DNA of 64,000 nucleotides, from NCBI RefSeq assembly GCF_000143415.4, contig NW_003314278.1, positions 78,371-142,370 on the forward strand. Direction: 5' to 3'. The notes below the pieces were generated by a model. The model was not told where the DNA came from. It worked only from the letters and a program-made list of their open reading frames with translations, and did not search any database. Both the position numbers and the translations under genes were made by a program. Positions 21,201-38,770 of the stretch are shown piece by piece (the first letter of the stretch is position 1; each line of letters starts with the position of its first letter). This DNA is from Selaginella moellendorffii (taxonomy: Eukaryota > Plantae > Lycopodiophyta).

Positions 21201-22090
21201 CAGGCTGGGAGTTTCGTATCCGGAGCTTACAGAAATGCAAGCTCGTGCCATCTTCGAAGCGGCTATAGCAATGTCCAATCAAGGCGTTAAAGTCCACCCT
21301 GAAATAATGGTTCCTCTTGTGGGGACTCCTCAGGTTCGTCGAGTTTTTGTGCAAGCTAATGTTTTGTCACGATTATCCTGTATACAGGAACTCGGAAACC
21401 AAGTTTCTGCAATCCACGGTGTAGCGGAAAGAGTCTTCTCGGAAGTTGGCAAAAGCCTGCCATACAAGATTGGAACTATGATCGAAATCCCTCGGGCAGC
21501 ACTCGTTGCAGACGAGGTAACAGAATCTCCCGTGGTTTTGTTTGCTTGATTCGGTGACACGCTAGATTGCATCACACGCGGAGTTTTTCTCTTTCGGCAC
21601 CAACGACCTGACGCAAATGACGTTTGGCTATAGCCGAGACGACGTGAGCAAGTTCTTACCCGTCTACCTCTCGCAAGGCATTCTACAGCATGATCCATTC
21701 GAGGTGCACGCATGACGTTTCACGAGGCTTTTCTTATACTTTTTTGTTCTTCCGGATCTCAGGTTCTTGACCAGAGAGGCGTCGGCCAACTTATCAGCAT
21801 TGCGACCGAGCGAGGCAGAAAAGCCAGGGATGGCTTGAAGGTGAAACGAGCTAAGTTGTGTGATTCATGGCTGACCGCCTGTGTAACATCAGGTAGGAGT
21901 TTGTGGAGAGCACGGTGGGGAGCCCATGTCCGTAGAGTTCTTCCATGAAGCGGGTCTAGACTACGTTTCGTGCTCGCCTTTCAGGTAAGAAAGAGAGAAA
22001 GAAAAGAAGATAATTCTAATGCAAATTTTTGTTTGATGTAGAGTGCCAATTGCGAGACTTGCTGCTGCGCAGGCAGCTACCAAGAAGTAG
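18227..22090 (+). CDS. PPDK: Pyruvate, orthophosphate dikinase with N-terminal transit peptide, multi-exon
   Basis: [65 protein letters not shown] (regulatory Thr and catalytic His), [58 protein letters not shown]. Stop at 22088-22090. Confidence 0.97.
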
Positions 22091-22197
22091 AATCGCAAGG
22101 AATTCATTCATGAAACTCTACTGACACTAAAAACTATACATACTGTAAATAATCTGCACGAACCGTGATTGTAAATGACTGGTGTTTATTTGTTTTT

Positions 22198-23483
22198 CTA
22201 GTCGTCTCCACTCAATCCTTCTCGCAAGCTTTCGAGTAGCTCTTGCGGCGAACTTAGAGCCTCTCTTTTCAGGTAGACGGCGTCCGCCCCCGACACCTTC
22301 ATCTGCCGTGCCTCCTCCATCGAAGCAACGCCCTAGACGAGAAGAAAAAACTGAGTTGGAGTGCGAGGAGAGGAGCTTAGACTCACCACAATGGATGCGG
22401 CTCCGAAGGGGAGCTTTTGAACCAGAGACTTGGCGATGTCCTGCCGAAAGCCTGGTATTGGAACCTGCAGGAGAAGGGAAAGAGCTTGATACTGATGGCA
22501 GGAGAGCAAAAATTATGTCAATCAACGCACCGCAACTCCAACTGAGATGTTGAAACCGAAGAGCGGGATGCCGAGTGTGGAGAGTTCCTCAAGTTCCTTG
22601 AGATTGACGACCTGAAAGTTTCTGATTTAATCTTGGTTTCAGAAAAAGGAGCTCACCTCCACAACTGCGTCAAGTCCAGCTGTAGCTATGTAGCGCAGAA
22701 TGGATGGCGTTCCTGCAAATCGAAGAGTTTGATTTTTTTTTTAGAGCTTGCGGAAACACACGTACCTTTGGAAAGAACTGAGTAGACGGCCGTGAGAGCA
22801 GCAGCACCGGATTCCCGAGTATCGATTATCTATGCAAAACAAAGCTTTGTGCTCGATACACAATTATGGATTGGCTACCTGTATCGGATGAATGATCCAA
22901 TCTTTGCGAAGAACTGGGACCTCCACCGCTGCACATCCGAGGAATTACTTCGCACAAACTTAGGAAACCAACGTCAAGGAGAACACAACATAGAAAGAAA
23001 GAAAGAAGAATCGCTACCTTTCGAAACAGCTTCCAGATCCAAAACTCCATCTGGCGATACTTCTTCGTCAGTGCAAACCGAGATGGCGTCAGCTCCTGGA
23101 CAAGGAAGCAAACACTCGAATCACGCCGCAAAGAAAAAGAGAGAACGAAAAGAATCCATACCCCATGTAACATAGTCCTGGCTCCTTTGCGCAACGCCCT
23201 CTGGCTTCTCCGCCGGAGAGGCCCGCGCGACCTCGGCCACGATCGCCGTGCGGCCCTGCATTGTGCTGGCGACGATCTTCTGCAGCAACCGGTGCTGGGG
23301 CGGCGGCAATCTCTGGAGTCCCTGCAGCCGCGACTGGAGCTGCCGCTCCTGCTCGTCCATGGCGGCCAGGCGCGCCTCCAGGATCCGCTGCTTGTTGCGC
23401 AGCAGCGAGGTGAGGCGCCGCTGGTGCTGCTGCTCCTCCGGGGACGCCGACGCCAGGCAAATCCGCCACGCCGGGATCGCCAT
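22198..23483 (-). CDS. Divergent indole-3-glycerol-phosphate synthase (TrpC)-fold protein, 287 aa, 8 exons
   Basis: Manual splice model, all GT-AG: 23483-23162, 23095-23018, 22928-22879, 22829-22766, 22712-22657, 22611-22531, 22464-22387, 22332-22198. Gives IVAEVARASP...GADAISVCTD...VPVLRKDWIIHPIQ...GLDAVVEVVN...LFGFNIS...SGADAVYL, collinear with IGPS motifs. Confidence 0.88.
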
Positions 23484-23623
23484 TCGCAAGAGCCCTAAAT
23501 TCACCCAAAAAGCCCTAAGTGTTTATAAATTTGGCGCCAAATAAAACACCAGTGTTTACCAGTCAAATAGTGAATAGTCAACAGTAGCATGCGCGACCCG
23601 GATCTTTAGTCTTTGCTTTGGCG
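23484..23623. promoter_or_regulatory. Putative 140-bp bidirectional promoter (IGPS-like / UGT-A)
   Basis: Divergent ATGs at 23483 (-) and 23624 (+), with palindromic tttataaa at ~23522. Confidence 0.5.
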
Positions 23624-25028
23624 ATGGCAGACGAGCAGCGTCTTCACATAGCAGCGCTTCCCTGCGATGGATCCGGCCATATCAATCCCATGCTCGAGCT
23701 TTGCCGCCGCCTCGTCCCGCTGGGATTTCACGTAAGTTTTGTTCTTCCCAGGAATCTGTGCTCCAAGGTGGAGTCGAGCCTGCGAGAAGATGACCTCCAC
23801 ATCGATCTGGTGCCGAGCCCAGCCACGGACGTGTCACTGATCATAGCTGCGGAGCTCCAAGAGGAAGTGAAAGCGGTTCTAGAGGCCATCCGACCACCGG
23901 TGAAGTGCCTAATCTCTGATTGCTTCTTGGGCTGGTCGCAGGACGTCGCCGCGAGCCTGGGAATCCCACAGATCGCCTTAAACACCAGTCACGCGATCAA
24001 TGAGGTGCTCTTCTACCATATCCCAGAGCTCGAGTCCCGGGGTTATATTCCTGCCAGTGGTAAGAACTAAAGTTTCGGTTTTGAGAAGAAAGGAGGATGT
24101 TTTACTCATACCTCTGCGCGTCCTTTCCTCTCTTTCAGGCAACCCTGACCACCAAACTTTGATCGACTTCATTCCCGGCCTCGAGCCTTTCCCGAGGAGA
24201 TTGCTTCCTCTTAGCTTCCAGCGCGGCGGTCCTGTTGTGCTTCTTCTGGGAGCTGCTGCCAAGCGAACAAAGGGAGCTGCGTGTGTTCTCGTCAACTCCA
24301 TCGAGGAGCTGGATCACGAACTTGTGACTTCGCGCAGGAAAGAGTTTCCCAACTATCTGCCAGTCGGACCACTCGTACCTCATGCGCTTCTGCAAGAGCA
24401 CGAAACTATCAGTTCTCCAGAAGAAGACACTAGTATCAGCTGGTTGGACAAACAACCTCACCGCTCGGTTCTCTACATCGCCTTCGGAAGCGTCATCTCC
24501 CTCCCGGCTGATCAAGTGGAGAAGATCGCTAAAGCTGTGCAAGCCACTCACCAGCCAGTCTTGTGGGCGATCAGACGAAACTTTGCAAGCGACGCACCTG
24601 AAAACTTCTTCGAAAGCCTGCAAGAAAAAGTTGGAGAGCACAGTTTAGTTGTGGAATGGGCTCCACAAGTGCCTGTCTTGCGCCAGTCCGCAGTTGGAGC
24701 CTTCTTAACGCACTGTGGATGGAACTCGGTGCTAGAGGCCCTGCTCTGTGGAGTACCAACACTTTGCTGGCCGTGCGCCTACGAGCAGAACTCGAATGCT
24801 CATGTAATGACGGAGAAGTGGAAGACTGGGGTGAAGTTGGCTGATGGTCCCGACGATGATGTCAAATGCGAAGACTTGGAGAAGATCATAGATACTGTAA
24901 TGAATGGCGAAGAAGGAAAAGCAATGAGACGCAGAGCCGAAGCTCTCAAGGAGATTGTGAGGACAAGTACTTGCCACGAGAAAAACATTCGGCAACTCAA
25001 GAACGTGATTGTAGCCGCTTCTCAGTAG
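23624..25028 (+). CDS. Family-1 UDP-glycosyltransferase UGT-A (~441 aa, intron 24060-24138)
   Basis: Catalytic GHINP and ISD; PSPG box WAPQVPVLRQSAVGAFLTHCGWNSVLEALLCGVPTLCWPCAYEQ. Confidence 0.95.
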
Positions 25029-29204: not shown

Positions 29205-29405
29205 CGCGGAGTTCTTCTCTTTCGGGACCAACTACTTGACGCAAATGACGTTTACATATCGCCGGGACAACGTGTCTGTCTATGCAAGGCATTTTACATA
29301 TCCATTCTAGTTTCATGAGACTGATCTCAGGTTCTCGACCAGAGAGGAGTCGGCCAGCTTGTCAGCATTGCGACCGAGCGAGGCAAAAAAGCAAGGAATG
29401 GAGAG
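29205..29405 (+). pseudogene. PPDK 3' fragment
   Basis: Similar to 21575-21830 (ctctttcgg.accaac, gacgcaaatgacgttt, tctcaggttct.gaccagagagg.gtcggcca). Confidence 0.85.
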
Positions 29406-29454
29406 AGACAGACAGACAGAGTTTGTTACTGAGGAAAAGAGTGAAATTTACGAC

Positions 29455-30035
29455 AATCAACGTACTGCAACTCCACCTAAAATGTTGAAACCGAAGACTG
29501 TTGAGAGTGGAGAGTTCTTCGAGCTCCTTGGGATTGACGAACCTGGATTTGATTTGGTTTCAGAGAAAGAATCCCAAAGCTCACCTCCACAACTGCGTTA
29601 AGTCCGGCTGTCACTATATGTTGCGTAGAAAGGATGGCATTCCTGCAAATCGAAGAGTTTGATTGATTGCTTTCACAGAGCTTGCGGAAACACATGTTCC
29701 TTTGGAAAGAACTGAGTAGACGGCCCTAAGAGCAGCAGTACCGGATCCCGAGTGTCGATTATCTACGCAACACAAAGCTTTGTGTTCAATACACAATTGT
29801 GGATTGGCTACCTGTATCGGATGAATGATCCAATCTTTGTGAAGAATTGGCGGCTCCACCGCTGCACATCCGAGGAATTACTTCAAGGAAATTTTGCCAA
29901 TGTCAGAACATGATAAGAAAGAAAGAAGAATCGTTACCTTTAGAAACAGTCTCTTTGCGATGTAGTGTTTGAGCTGACGCTATCTCGGTTTGCACTGACG
30001 AAGAAGTGTCGCCAGATGGAGTTTGGATCTAGAAG
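29455..30035 (-). pseudogene. IGPS-like gene fragment (exons 3-6 on the minus strand, exon 2 locally inverted at ~29970-30035)
   Basis: Similar to 22520-23095, including introns. Confidence 0.85.
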
Positions 30036-30189
30036 AGGCCTCATTGCTCTTCCCGGGGACAATACCTCCTTACAAGCTGGGATCTTTGGCTATGCACACC
30101 ATCTAGTGTTGTTAATGGTGTCGTTTACAAGCTTGTCCTTCTCTTTCACTGATCCTGAGCCAACCCTCGAGGTCTTCTACATCCCAGCA

Positions 30190-30486
30190 TCGATCATGTG
30201 GTCTGTTAACACTTCCCGGATGAAAGACGAGTTCTTTCCGGAACCTCAAAAGTTTGATCCTCTCAGGTTTCAAGGCAATGGCCCAGCTCCTTACGTCTTC
30301 ACACCGTTTGGAGGAGGGCCTCGGACGTGCCCTGGAAATGAATTTGCAAAGATGGAGATGCTCGTTTTCTTGCATTACCTGCTGCTAAGCCACGACTGGA
30401 AGCCTGTGATCACAAATGAAGGTATTATAGTGGAAACAGCGCCTCTGCCGGCCCATGGTTTGCCTGTGAAGCTCAGCAAGAGATGA
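30190..30486 (+). pseudogene. Cytochrome P450 last-exon fragment (CYP85 clan, CYP716/725-like)
   Basis: FFPEPQKFDPLRF, heme motif PFGGGPRTCPG, C-terminal PAHGLPVKL. No upstream P450 exons were found in the window. Confidence 0.85.
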
Positions 30487-31030
30487 TCGTCAGAATCTAT
30501 CCATGGAACTTTGAAAAGACAGTGTCCAAAATAGCTGTTTTGTGATCTGATCTTGTGAACGATGGAACTAATTGCGACTGGTCCACGTGTCACCAGCCCG
30601 ACATCTCGACCTGGAACCTGCGAAAGACTGCTAAGGCACGGCTGTCAAACTCACTCTTAGATACTCACAGGGCCACTGGATTTCCCCAGCTGGCCGCAAG
30701 AACCACAAGAAACCACATGGCCACCATCAATTGATACCATTTGTAAACTTTTCACATCTTGGCTGCTTGTAGCAAAAAACGCTTTAAGGGTAAACAAAAA
30801 CTTTGTCACGTATTCAGAACAAATGTCACAAAAAACTAAAGAAGACAAGAGGAAGTAGTCTCCTCGGGAAAGGCTCAAGGCCGGGAATGAAGTCGATCAA
30901 AGTTTGATGGTCAGGGTTGCATGAAAGAGAGGAAAGAACGCACAGAGGTATGCCTCCTTTCTTTTCAAACTTTTGTTCTTACCACTGCGGGAGCTCTGGG
31001 ATATCATTTGGCGGGCTTTGTTTTGGAGAG

Positions 31031-31330
31031 AATGGCGATCCCGGCGTGGGCGTCGGTGTCCCCGGAGGAGCAGCAGCACCATCGGCGCCTCACCTTGCTG
31101 CTGCGCAGCAAGCAGAGGGTCCTGAAGGCGCCCCTGGCCGCCATGGATGAGCAGGAGCGGCAGCTTCAGTCGCGGCTGGAGGGACTCCAGAGAATGCCGC
31201 CACCCCAGCACCGGCTGCTGCAGAAGATCGTCCACACGGCAATCGTGGCCGAGGTCGCGCGGGCCTCTCCGGCGGAGAAGCCAGAGGGCGTTCGGCAAAG
31301 GAGCCACGACTATGTTAAAATGGGTATGGT
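31031..31330 (+). pseudogene. IGPS-like exon-1 duplicate
   Basis: MAIPAW...PEEQQH.RRLT...AIVAEVARASPAEKPEGV, similar to 23483-23162 with short deletions. Downstream exons are not attached. Confidence 0.9.
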
Positions 31331-31515
31331 TTTTTGCTTCGCTCTTAACCACGAAGTTATGGTCTCGCGGGCTAGAGGCAAGTTCCTAAGAGCAAACGCG
31401 ACGTGCGACGTGCGACGTGCGGCGTGCGGCGTCCTTGCTTTGAAAATGTCGCCCTTGCAAAAAAACCCTCGTCTAATGTTAAGATCGGTCGCTCCTGATC
31501 AAGAGCAACACCACC

Positions 31516-32651: not shown

Positions 32652-34059
32652 ATGGCGGACGAGCAGCGCCTTCACGTAGCGGTGCTCCCAACCACCGGCT
32701 CCGGCCACATCAATCCCATGCTCGAGCTCTGCCGCCGCCTCGTCCCACTAGGATTCCAGGTAAGCTTCGTCTATCCCAGCAATCTATGCCCCAAGCTGGA
32801 GTCGAGCCTTCAGCACGATGATCTTCACTTCCAAGTGGTGCCAAGCCCAGCCTCGGACAAGCATTTGCTCATGGATCCCGCGTTGCAAGAGGACGTGAGA
32901 CCGGTTCTAGAGGCCCTCCGTCCACCAGTAAAGTGCCTTATCGCTGATATGTTCTTAGGCTGGTCACAGGATGTGGCCGAGAGCCTGGGGATTCCACGAG
33001 TTGCCTTCATTCCCAGTGACTCAGTCATCGAAGCGATGTGCTACCATATTCCAGAGCTTGTCTCCAGGGGTTTCATTCCTGGCCATGTTCCTGCCAATGG
33101 TGAGAAGAAGAAGAAACTTTACATTGCTTCATACCGATCGACAAATATGTGTTGTTGTCTCAGCCGATCCAAATCCGGACGCTTTGATCGACTTCATCCC
33201 CGGTCTTGAGCCTTTTACAAGAGAGTTGCTCCCTCTTGCCTTCCAGCACGGGGGACCCATTGTGACCACTGTGGGAGTTGCAGCCAGACGAACAAAGGAT
33301 GCGGTTTGTATTGTCGTCAACACGATTGAGGAGTTGGATCAGGATGTCGTGAATGGACGGAGGTTGCTGTTCTCCAGTTATTTACCAGTCGGACCTCTGG
33401 TACCTGCGGAGCTCCTGCAAGAACAGCACCCGATCACTCTCAGTTCTCCAAATGACACTAGCATGATCTGGCTGGACAAACAAGCTTACGGCTCGGTTCT
33501 CTATATCGCTTTTGGCAGTGTTGTTACTCTGCCAGCCGACCAAGTGGAGAAGATTGCAAGAGCTGTAAAAGCCACTCGTCAGCCAGTCTTGTGGGCGATC
33601 AGGAGGAACTTTGCAAAAGACGTACCTGAGAACTTTTATGAAAGCTTGCAAGAGATAGTTGGGGCGCAAGCCTGCCTGGTGGTGGAATGGGCTCCGCAAG
33701 TAAACGTCTTGCGCCACTCCGCGGTTGGAGCCTTCTTAATGCACGGTGGATGGAACTCAGCTCTAGAAGCCCTGTGCTGTGGAGTACCAATGCTTTGCTG
33801 GCCCTGCGGTAACGATCAGAACTTGAATGCTCTCACGATAGTGAAGAAGTGGAGAATTGGGATAATGGTGGCTCATGGACCCAAAGACGATGTGAGAAGC
33901 GAAGACTTGGGAAACGTTATAGATGCTGTGATGAACGGCGAGGAAGGGAGGAGGATGAGGAGCAGAGCTCAAGAACTTAAAAAGATTGTGAGGGCAGGTA
34001 CTTGCCTGGAGAGAAATCTTCGACAGCTCAAGGATGTGATCATAGCCGCGTCTCAATAG
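32652..34059 (+). CDS. Family-1 UDP-glycosyltransferase UGT-B1 (one intron, ~33100-33163)
   Basis: GHINP, IAD, PSPG WAPQVNVLRHSAVGAFLMHGGWNSALEALCCGVPMLCWPCGNDQ. Confidence 0.95.
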
Positions 34060-37364: not shown

Positions 37365-38770
37365 CTATTGAGACGCGGCTATGATCACATCCTTGAACTG
37401 TCGAAGATTTCTCTCCAGGCAAGTACCTGCTCTCACAATCTTTTTAAGTTCTTGAGCTCTGCTCCTCATCCTCCTCCCTTCCTCGCCGTTCATCACAGCA
37501 TCTATAACGTTTCCCAAGTCTTCGCTTCTCACATCGTCTTTGGGTCCATGAGCCACCATTATCCCAGTTCTCCACTTCTTCACTATCGTGAGAGCATTCA
37601 AGTTCTGATCGTTATCGCAGGGCCAGCAAAGCATTGGTACTCCACAGCACAGGGCTTCTAGAGCTGAGTTCCATCCACCGTGCATTAAGAAGGCTCCAAC
37701 CGCGGAGTGGCGCAAGACGTTTACTTGCGGAGCCCATTCCACCACCAGGCAGGCTTGCTCCCCAACTATCTCTTGCAAGCTTTCATAAAAGTTCTCAGGT
37801 ACGTCTTTTGCAAAGTTCCTCCTGATCGCCCACAAGACTGGCTGACGGGTGGCTTTTACAGCTCTTGCAATCTTCTCCACTTGGTCGGCTGGCAGAGTAA
37901 CAACACTGCCAAAAGCGATATAGAGAACCGAGCCGTAAGCTTGTTTGTCCAGCCAGATCATGCTAGTGTCATTTGGAGAACTGAGAGTGATCGGGTGCTG
38001 TTCTTGCAGAAGCTCCGCAGGTACCAGAGGTCCGACTGGTAAATAACTGGAGAACAGCAACCTCCGTCCATTCACGACTTCCTGATCCAACTCCTCAATC
38101 GTGTTGACGACAATGCAAACCGCATCCTTTGTTCGTCTGGCTGCAACTCCCAGAGTGGTCACAATGGGTCCCCAGTGCTGGAAGGCAAGAGGGAGCAACT
38201 CTCGTGTAAAAGGCTCGAGACCGGGGATGAAGTCGATCAAAGCTTCCGGATTTGGATCGGCTGAGACAACACATATTCGTCGATCGGTATGAAGCAATTG
38301 TAAAGTTTCTTCTTCTTCTCACCATTGGCAGGAACATGGCCAGGAATGAAACCCATGGAGACAAGCTCTGGAATATGGTAGCACATCGCTTCGCTGACTG
38401 AGTCACTGGGAATGAAGGCAACTCGTGGAATCCCCAGGCTCTCGGCCACGTCCTGTGACCAGCCTAAGAACATATCAGCGATAAGGCACTTTACTGGTGG
38501 ACGGAGGGCCTCTAGAACCGGTGTCACGTCCTCTTGCAACGCGGGATCCATGAGCAAAAGCTTGTCCGAGGCTGGGCTTGGCACCACTTGGAAGTGAAGA
38601 TCATCGTGCCGAAGGCTCGACTCCAGCTTGGGGCATAGATTGCTGGGATAGACGAAGGTTACCTGGAATCCTAGCGGGACGAGGCGGCGGCAGAGCTCGA
38701 GCATGGGATTGATGTGGCCGGAGCCGGCGGTTGGGAGCACCGCTACGTGAAGGCGCTGCTCGTCCGCCAT
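37365..38770 (-). CDS. Family-1 UDP-glycosyltransferase UGT-B2 (inverted twin of UGT-B1)
   Basis: Intact two-exon gene; PSPG ends CWPCDNDQ. Confidence 0.95.

Follow-up and report, generated by a model that had tools for sequence, protein, structure and literature searches.

[quoted passage not shown] Among TIM-barrel enzymes IGPS is a textbook example, and those who design enzymes favour it as a scaffold. A preliminary description, made by reading the sequence, had taken the product for a maintained barrel outside the Trp pathway that acts on a non-phosphorylated substrate or serves as a regulatory or scaffold subunit. Our analysis identifies the gene, LOC112346816, as an intact, transcribed and selectively maintained IGPS paralogue that belongs to a family of the green lineage.

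The gene has 8 exons on the minus strand, whose lengths total 864 nt (287 codons and the stop), and 7 introns of 45-89 nt each, all with GT-AG ends. Exon 1 (23162..23483) opens with the start codon at 23483-23481 and carries codons 1-107 plus 1 nt, which cover the N-terminal helices, strand β1 and the motif E84-V-A86-R87. Exon 2 (23018..23095) holds β2 and the loop T116-D117-E-E-V-S-P-D-G124, exon 3 (22879..22928) β3 with R141-K142-D143-W144 and H147-P148-x-Q150, exon 4 (22766..22829) α3 and β4, and exon 5 (22657..22712) α4 and β5, with E190 as its last residue. V-V-N193, α5 and β6 with N211-I-S213 follow in exon 6 (22531..22611), P221-G222-F, α6 and the first part of β7 in exon 7 (22387..22464), and G244, α7, β8 with K265-R266-E267, α8, the C-terminal G-D-D and the stop codon (22200-22198) in exon 8 (22198..22332). 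Transcript contigs from four public runs, belonging to four studies, were aligned to the region 22000-23700, and all 7 introns were recovered as exact joints with CT..AC ends on the plus strand (that is GT..AG for the gene). In the order of the gene these joints are 23094/23161, 22928/23018, 22829/22879, 22711/22765, 22609/22655, 22462/22529 and 22331/22386. Since seven such precise intron removals are impossible from genomic DNA, the runs, whose RNA nature was otherwise a guess, represent spliced transcripts. It may be added that a minor splice form uses an acceptor 30 nt upstream (joint 22958/23018) and, by reading of its sequence, runs into a stop codon, and that the contigs carry a one-letter variant at the exon 6 boundary. 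The intact 8-exon, 287-aa gene of the preliminary description, for which RNA confirmation of the splicing had been proposed, is thus borne out, its spliced product being letter for letter RefSeq XP_024532330.1, an "uncharacterized protein" of S. moellendorffii.

The start of the protein also stands as first described, because in-frame stops immediately precede the ATG and no intron joint lies upstream of 23483 in the contigs over 22000-23700, in which no upstream coding exon was found. A joint at 23511/23558 was considered as an upstream intron and ruled out (one run, GC..TT ends and 7 replaced letters), and a missing upstream exon for a transit peptide was rejected on account of the in-frame stops and the lack of an upstream joint. 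The stops lie in a short upstream region (23484..23626) common to this gene and a head-to-head, divergent UDP-glycosyltransferase (UGT) gene, whose UDPGT Pfam match is at 24000-25025. On the other side, the 3′ untranslated region (22040..22197, minus strand) runs into a convergent, tail-to-tail pyruvate,phosphate-dikinase-like (PPDK-like) gene on the plus strand, with whose last exon (from 22040) and 3′ end it overlaps; a Pfam PEP-utilizers_C match of that gene is at 21235-21546. Here the contigs are continuous over 22040-22331, and where their ends come loose they match the PPDK exon that precedes. A rearranged partial duplicate of this arrangement (PPDK fragment, IGPS-like gene and UGT) is present 6-8 kb away at 29205-31346, with two inverted pieces and without exons 7-8; its exon-1-like piece is RefSeq LOC112346817 (138 aa). 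A second S. moellendorffii entry, XP_002965741.2 on another scaffold, differs from our protein in 3 of 287 residues (I34A, A183V and S257A). The changes at codons 34 and 257 are found among the variant letters of the transcript contigs, the remaining transcript changes being synonymous, and therefore both haplotype alleles are expressed.

The relation of the product to IGPS extends over the whole protein. The Pfam IGPS profile (PF00218) matches residues 32-262 at its positions 2-235 with 91.1 bits against a cut-off of 27, and phmmer against PDB sequences returned only IGPS and IGPS-derived designs, the best being Thermus thermophilus 1vc4 (E = 7e-16). When the exons were scanned one by one, a weak IGPS match (E = 1e-3) was seen in exon 1 only, the others being too short, and a PDB search with exon 1 alone gave only noise. 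An AF2 model of the Selaginella protein, built from a 27-member family alignment (mean pLDDT 88.4, pTM 0.80), begins with a long N-terminal helix (15-56), continues with another at 65-75 and then has eight β-strands with helices in between. A structural comparison with IGPS had been proposed as a check; the best 50 Foldseek matches in PDB are all IGPS or IGPS-derived designs and scaffolds (E ~1e-15, TM 0.65-0.77). ESM Atlas searches by feature and by shape gave only generic IGPS clusters (diatoms, bacteria), the shape search being consistent with Foldseek. The preliminary description had also reported a helical Q/R/L-rich N-terminal extension, which has to be corrected. The Pfam match begins at residue 32 with profile position 2, and in a MAFFT alignment L24 and K31 fall on residues 5-15 of bacterial TrpC, in the first helix; hence this segment is mostly the N-terminal helical part of IGPS itself, and only about 20 residues are extra.

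On this scaffold the active site was mapped residue by residue through a HMMER alignment to Mycobacterium tuberculosis (Mt) IGPS, a MAFFT alignment that included TrpC of E. coli and other bacteria, and residue counts among the family members described below. In common with canonical IGPS (M. tuberculosis 3qja, T. thermophilus 1vc4, Sulfolobus solfataricus (Ss) 1igs), which has the same (βα)8 barrel and N-terminal helices, the family keeps the equivalents of Glu51, Arg54, Asp111, the Gln of the β3-α3 loop, Glu159, Asn180 and Gly212. In the Selaginella protein Ss Glu51/Mt Glu57 corresponds to Glu84, Ss Asp111 to Asp143, Ss Glu159/Mt Glu168 to Glu190 and Ss Asn180/Mt Asn189 to Asn211, all four being invariant in the family. 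The differences from IGPS are as systematic. The lysine of the β1 E-x-K motif (Ss Lys53/Mt Lys59) is Ala86 here and a small residue throughout (A/S/T/G/C/V in 31 members, never K or R), and that of R-K-D-F, the catalytic acid of IGPS (Ss Lys110/Mt Lys119), is Lys142 in Selaginella and is a Lys in bryophytes too, at a position that is unconstrained in the family (K8, R15, W3, T3, A1 and S1 among 31). Ss Arg182/Mt Arg191 aligns with Ser213 or lies within an insertion; this insertion, of five residues, comes after the Asn180 site. From the β7 ESG motif two residues (Ss Glu210-Ser211/Mt Glu219-Ser220) are deleted, in 27 of 27 aligned members, with Gly244 alone kept, and the β8 phosphate loop G-(E/S)-(S/A) has become Lys265-Arg266-Glu267, with K/R and then R/H/K across the family. 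The loop between β1 and α1 has four residues fewer than that of IGPS, and new invariants appear at Trp144, His147 and Asn193, together with a C-terminal GDD. Every motif substitution named in the preliminary description (at β1, YFQGS to VSPDG, NNR to N211-I-S, loss of ESG, and GES to K265-R266-E267) is present in these alignments, and the Glu159 and Asn180 equivalents which it listed as kept are E190 and N211. Its third retained residue, the Lys110 equivalent, does stand as K142 in the RKDW of Selaginella; as a family trait it fails, since only 8 of 31 members have it.

Whether these features are peculiar to Selaginella was answered by the family itself. An exhaustive HMMER search with exon 1 gave 18 relatives, and three word-indexed searches added others. 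By source names, the members comprise chlorophytes (Trebouxia, Chlorella, Monoraphidium, Chlamydomonas eustigma and Ostreobium), streptophyte algae (Chlorokybus, Klebsormidium and Mesotaenium), mosses (Sphagnum species), liverworts (Riccia and Calypogeia), the lycophyte Selaginella and ferns (Ceratopteris, Adiantum and Pteridium). Right at the exon 1 boundary (…W-G) several genomic ORF fragments come to their end, a sign that this intron position may be common to family members. In a maximum-likelihood tree that combines 31 full-length members with 14 bacterial TrpC, the canonical IGPS in it being all bacterial, the 31 members form one clade (100/100) with a long stem, separate from bacterial TrpC. 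Within the clade chlorophytes are followed by streptophyte algae, bryophytes and then Selaginella with ferns; as this order follows the species tree, vertical descent is indicated. The orthologues that were to be sought in algae, bryophytes and ferns have thus been found, and of the shared RKDW/NIS/KRE motifs by which they were to be recognized, W144, D143 and N211 are invariant and the β8 position is basic, and the Lys of RKDW does not hold. No member from a non-green eukaryote was seen in the exon-1 HMMER or the word-indexed searches, and no named seed-plant protein came up in the exhaustive search, made with exon 1 only, or in the word-indexed ones, so that the family is likely to be absent from seed plants. 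When 185,579 genomes of prokaryotic species were scanned with the signature DWx[LI]HP[LI]Q[IV][AV], no relative was found, and a prokaryotic origin was rejected on this ground. The 80 loci kept from a bacterial TrpC profile scan (mostly Acidobacteriota, Pseudomonadota and Actinomycetota) include no cyanobacterial TrpC. In databases the members are named IGPS (UniRef and JGI), "IGPS-like" (Klebsormidium) or uncharacterised. In the literature searched, no plant or algal family of IGPS-like proteins is described, and the wheat 'IGPS-like' TaTGW-7A was rejected as a relative because it belongs to a different, unrelated TIM-barrel family. The IGPS-like family of the green lineage, from chlorophytes to ferns, therefore appears not to have been described before.

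The members differ at their N-termini. Most full-length algal members and 4 of 4 bryophyte members have a presequence of 45-120 aa before the conserved helix, rich in Ser/Thr/Arg/Lys and almost free of Asp/Glu, which resembles organelle transit peptides; a few algal entries begin at or near the helix. Selaginella and 9 of 9 fern sequences have 15-30 residues before the helix and no presequence. Judged by composition, the ancestral protein would have been targeted to the plastid, with the presequence lost in vascular plants.

Among known systems, the nearest enzyme is IGPS and the nearest concept is the class of "IGPS-like protein" of Tang et al. 2019. These authors found PfAMR1 (Pf3D7_1363700) and two Vitrella brassicaformis paralogues to be IGPS-type barrels in which key residues are not conserved; the 'IGPS-like' proteins of Plasmodium and Vitrella did not complement trpC, and PfAMR1 is essential for apicoplast biogenesis (PMC6380595). 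As in the Selaginella protein, an IGPS-homologous barrel with non-conserved catalytic and binding residues occurs in eukaryotes that have plastids, whether next to Trp synthesis or independently of it, and the green algal and bryophyte members also have organelle-type presequences. PfAMR1 differs in being very large with long extensions, whereas the Selaginella protein is a bare 287-aa barrel, and there is no presequence in Selaginella or the ferns. A second case comes from the colourless ochrophyte Leucomyxa plasmidifera, whose TrpC-TrpF fusion, called a 'pseudoenzyme', has Ala in place of an essential Lys (PMC11528492). Here too a TrpC-derived domain with this replacement is kept in a plastid context without a role in the Trp pathway, but the fusion is a relic, confined to its lineage, of a canonical enzyme in fused form, whereas the green family is stand-alone, vertically inherited and has invariants of its own.

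These invariants bear on whether the old pocket is in use. Of the 31 members, all share 19 positions, every one of which (19/19) is present in Selaginella, and 11 of these 19 are polar. Seven of the 11 (E84, R87, D117, D143, E190, N193 and N211) lie from -1 to +4 of the C-ends of the strands, a zone of 48 out of 193 barrel positions (hypergeometric p = 0.006), and H147 and Q150 are just past it in the β3-α3 loop. At the opposite end of the barrel the conserved residues are Gly/Ala/Pro/Leu/Val, D186 being the single Asp among them. Taken together, the conserved positions show no enrichment on the catalytic face (p = 0.40), so that only the polar residues carry the signal. The family's own invariants include Arg87, Asp117, Trp144, His147, Gln150 and Asn193; as compared with IGPS, His147 (Asp in TrpC), Trp144 (Phe in TrpC) and Asn193 are specific to the family, and the C-terminal Gly-Asp-Asp occurs in 22 of 31. 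Such a pattern fits a rebuilt putative pocket that is in use better than a relic. Selection was estimated from two fern orthologues (82% identical), for which dN = 0.12 and dS = 0.62 give dN/dS = 0.195; between Selaginella and other lineages the synonymous sites are saturated and dN/dS is unusable. That the gene is maintained, as had been supposed, agrees with this value, with the spread of the family from chlorophytes to ferns and with the expression of both Selaginella alleles.

The alternative that survives best is a catalytically dead pseudoenzyme, whose barrel would act as a scaffold, a regulatory subunit or a metabolite sensor, for example by binding a protein or a Trp-pathway intermediate without turnover. 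It would account for both IGPS lysines being lost or unconstrained and for the deletion of Glu210, it has precedents in plastid-bearing lineages (PfAMR1, PMC6380595; the Leucomyxa fusion, PMC11528492), and it sits well with a conservation that, taken overall, does not favour the catalytic face. The long conserved N-terminal helix and the C-terminal GDD tail are possible interaction elements. Yet nine invariant polar residues have stayed at the catalytic end and the β3-α3 loop since the chlorophyte-streptophyte split, and His147 and Asn193 were gained relative to IGPS, as one would expect of a rebuilt site more than of a relic. We therefore hold a dead enzyme to be possible and somewhat doubtful.

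Much less can be said for a working IGPS, that is a divergent isozyme of the Trp pathway, as the automatic UniRef names of the orthologues would have it. The Pfam gathering threshold is passed, the orthologues carry the name IGPS in UniRef and JGI, and Selaginella does keep the equivalents of Glu51, Lys110, Glu159 and Asn180. But Lys53 is replaced by Ala and Arg182 by Ser, Glu210-Ser211 is deleted, the β8 phosphate loop is replaced, and the Lys110 position varies freely across the family. In MtIGPS no activity could be detected for the corresponding Ala mutants K59A and E219A, and K119R lowers kcat ~2,700-fold (PMC10591298). All 14 matches to NCBIfam TrpC models (13 equivalogs and 1 subfamily) score 43-91 bits against cut-offs of 258-1386, the best having 90.5 bits against 284, and the Vitrella and Plasmodium 'IGPS-like' proteins failed to complement trpC. 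The preliminary description was right in this respect, and we are nearly certain that the Selaginella protein is not a working IGPS; an isozyme appears very improbable. Because residues that inactivate MtIGPS when mutated to Ala are absent, turnover of CdRP by the family would be impossible. Finally, the reading as a locus without function, whether a pseudogene, a copy in lineage-specific decay or an artefact of annotation, to which the truncated and rearranged duplicate 6-8 kb away lends some colour by showing that the region does yield dead copies, was rejected with hardly any reservation, as it is contradicted by the intact frame, the correct splicing and expression of both alleles in four studies, the full set of invariant residues, the fern dN/dS of 0.20 and the orthologues across the green lineage.

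The reading that we favour, with some confidence, is a repurposed barrel of putative ligand-binding or catalytic function. The family has kept the (βα)8 barrel of IGPS and, of its acidic core, Glu84, Asp143, Glu190 and Asn211, while Lys53, Glu210/Ser211, Arg182 and the β8 phosphate loop were lost family-wide and Lys110 was freed from constraint. The family would have given up CdRP, and the old active-site pocket would still serve for binding, and probably for converting, some other small molecule. This molecule would be anchored without the standard β7/β8 phosphate grip. The basic pair of β8 could possibly still hold an anion, even phosphate, and the non-phosphorylated substrate of the preliminary description may be regarded as a guess. 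In its evolution, a plastid-targeted ancestral protein would have lost its presequence in vascular plants. It may be noted, and we count it against the repurposed barrel, that the pocket invariants could instead serve fold stability or protein-protein contacts. A bolder version of the same reading, offered only tentatively, is that of an unrecognised green-lineage enzyme with new chemistry on the IGPS scaffold, having a carboxylate/His/Asn site and a basic β8 anchor, which would be ancestrally of the plastid, cytosolic in vascular plants and lost in seed plants, and which may have a functional or evolutionary tie to the AMR1-type IGPS-like proteins of apicomplexan plastid biogenesis.

To our knowledge, natural repurposing of IGPS is almost undocumented, PfAMR1 being the only studied case and one without a known activity. 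The present family is compact (a barrel of ~290 aa), strongly conserved, and occurs in groups with tractable models (green algae, mosses and liverworts), and it thereby offers a way to test what IGPS-like barrels do. Its systematic mis-annotation inflates the counts of Trp-pathway genes in algae, bryophytes and ferns. For the green lineage, it adds one more gene to the short list of those kept from algae to ferns and apparently dropped by seed plants.

The gene for a relative of indole-3-glycerol-phosphate synthase (the IGPS-like gene) lies between two neighbours, with which it is arranged tail to tail on one side and head to head on the other. Its convergent neighbour is a pyruvate,phosphate-dikinase-like (PPDK-like) gene at 21235-22091 on the forward strand, which carries the Pfam domain PEP-utilizers_C and whose last exon begins at 22040. 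Since unbroken transcript contigs run over 22040-22331, from this last exon into exon 8 of the IGPS-like gene, the two convergent genes have overlapping 3′ ends. On the other side is a UDP-glycosyltransferase (UGT) gene (23618-25028, forward strand), the start codons of the two genes being about 140 bp apart. Together with two paralogous copies, at 32652-33521 on the forward and 37903-38770 on the reverse strand (about 72% DNA identity), it forms a local UGT cluster in the window.

The block of PPDK fragment, IGPS-like gene and UGT was also found to be duplicated in part, with rearrangement, at 29205-31346. Here the copy of IGPS-like exons 3-6 (29415-29949, 80% identity) keeps the same strand, the copies of exon 2 (29971-30035, 94% identity) and exon 1 (31030-31346, 83% identity) are inverted, and exons 7-8 are absent. 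The exon-1-like piece, named LOC112346817 in RefSeq (138 aa, XP_024532331.1), looks like a pseudogene fragment.

In the transcripts of the IGPS-like gene itself, intron 2 (22929-23017) is retained in some contigs, and contigs of two runs use a minor alternative acceptor at 22958 that adds 30 nt, in which, by our reading of the sequence, a stop codon would be encountered. A variant letter at 22531, the last base of exon 6, marks the second haplotype and is, as we read it, synonymous.

A further member of the IGPS-like family, P0012 (locus L002, a contig of SRR8128907), is a protein of 392 aa with a Ser-rich presequence of 120 residues, and its closest relative shares at most 49% identity with it. 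The tree places it between Mesotaenium and the land plants. It may come from a streptophyte alga of a group that has been little sampled.
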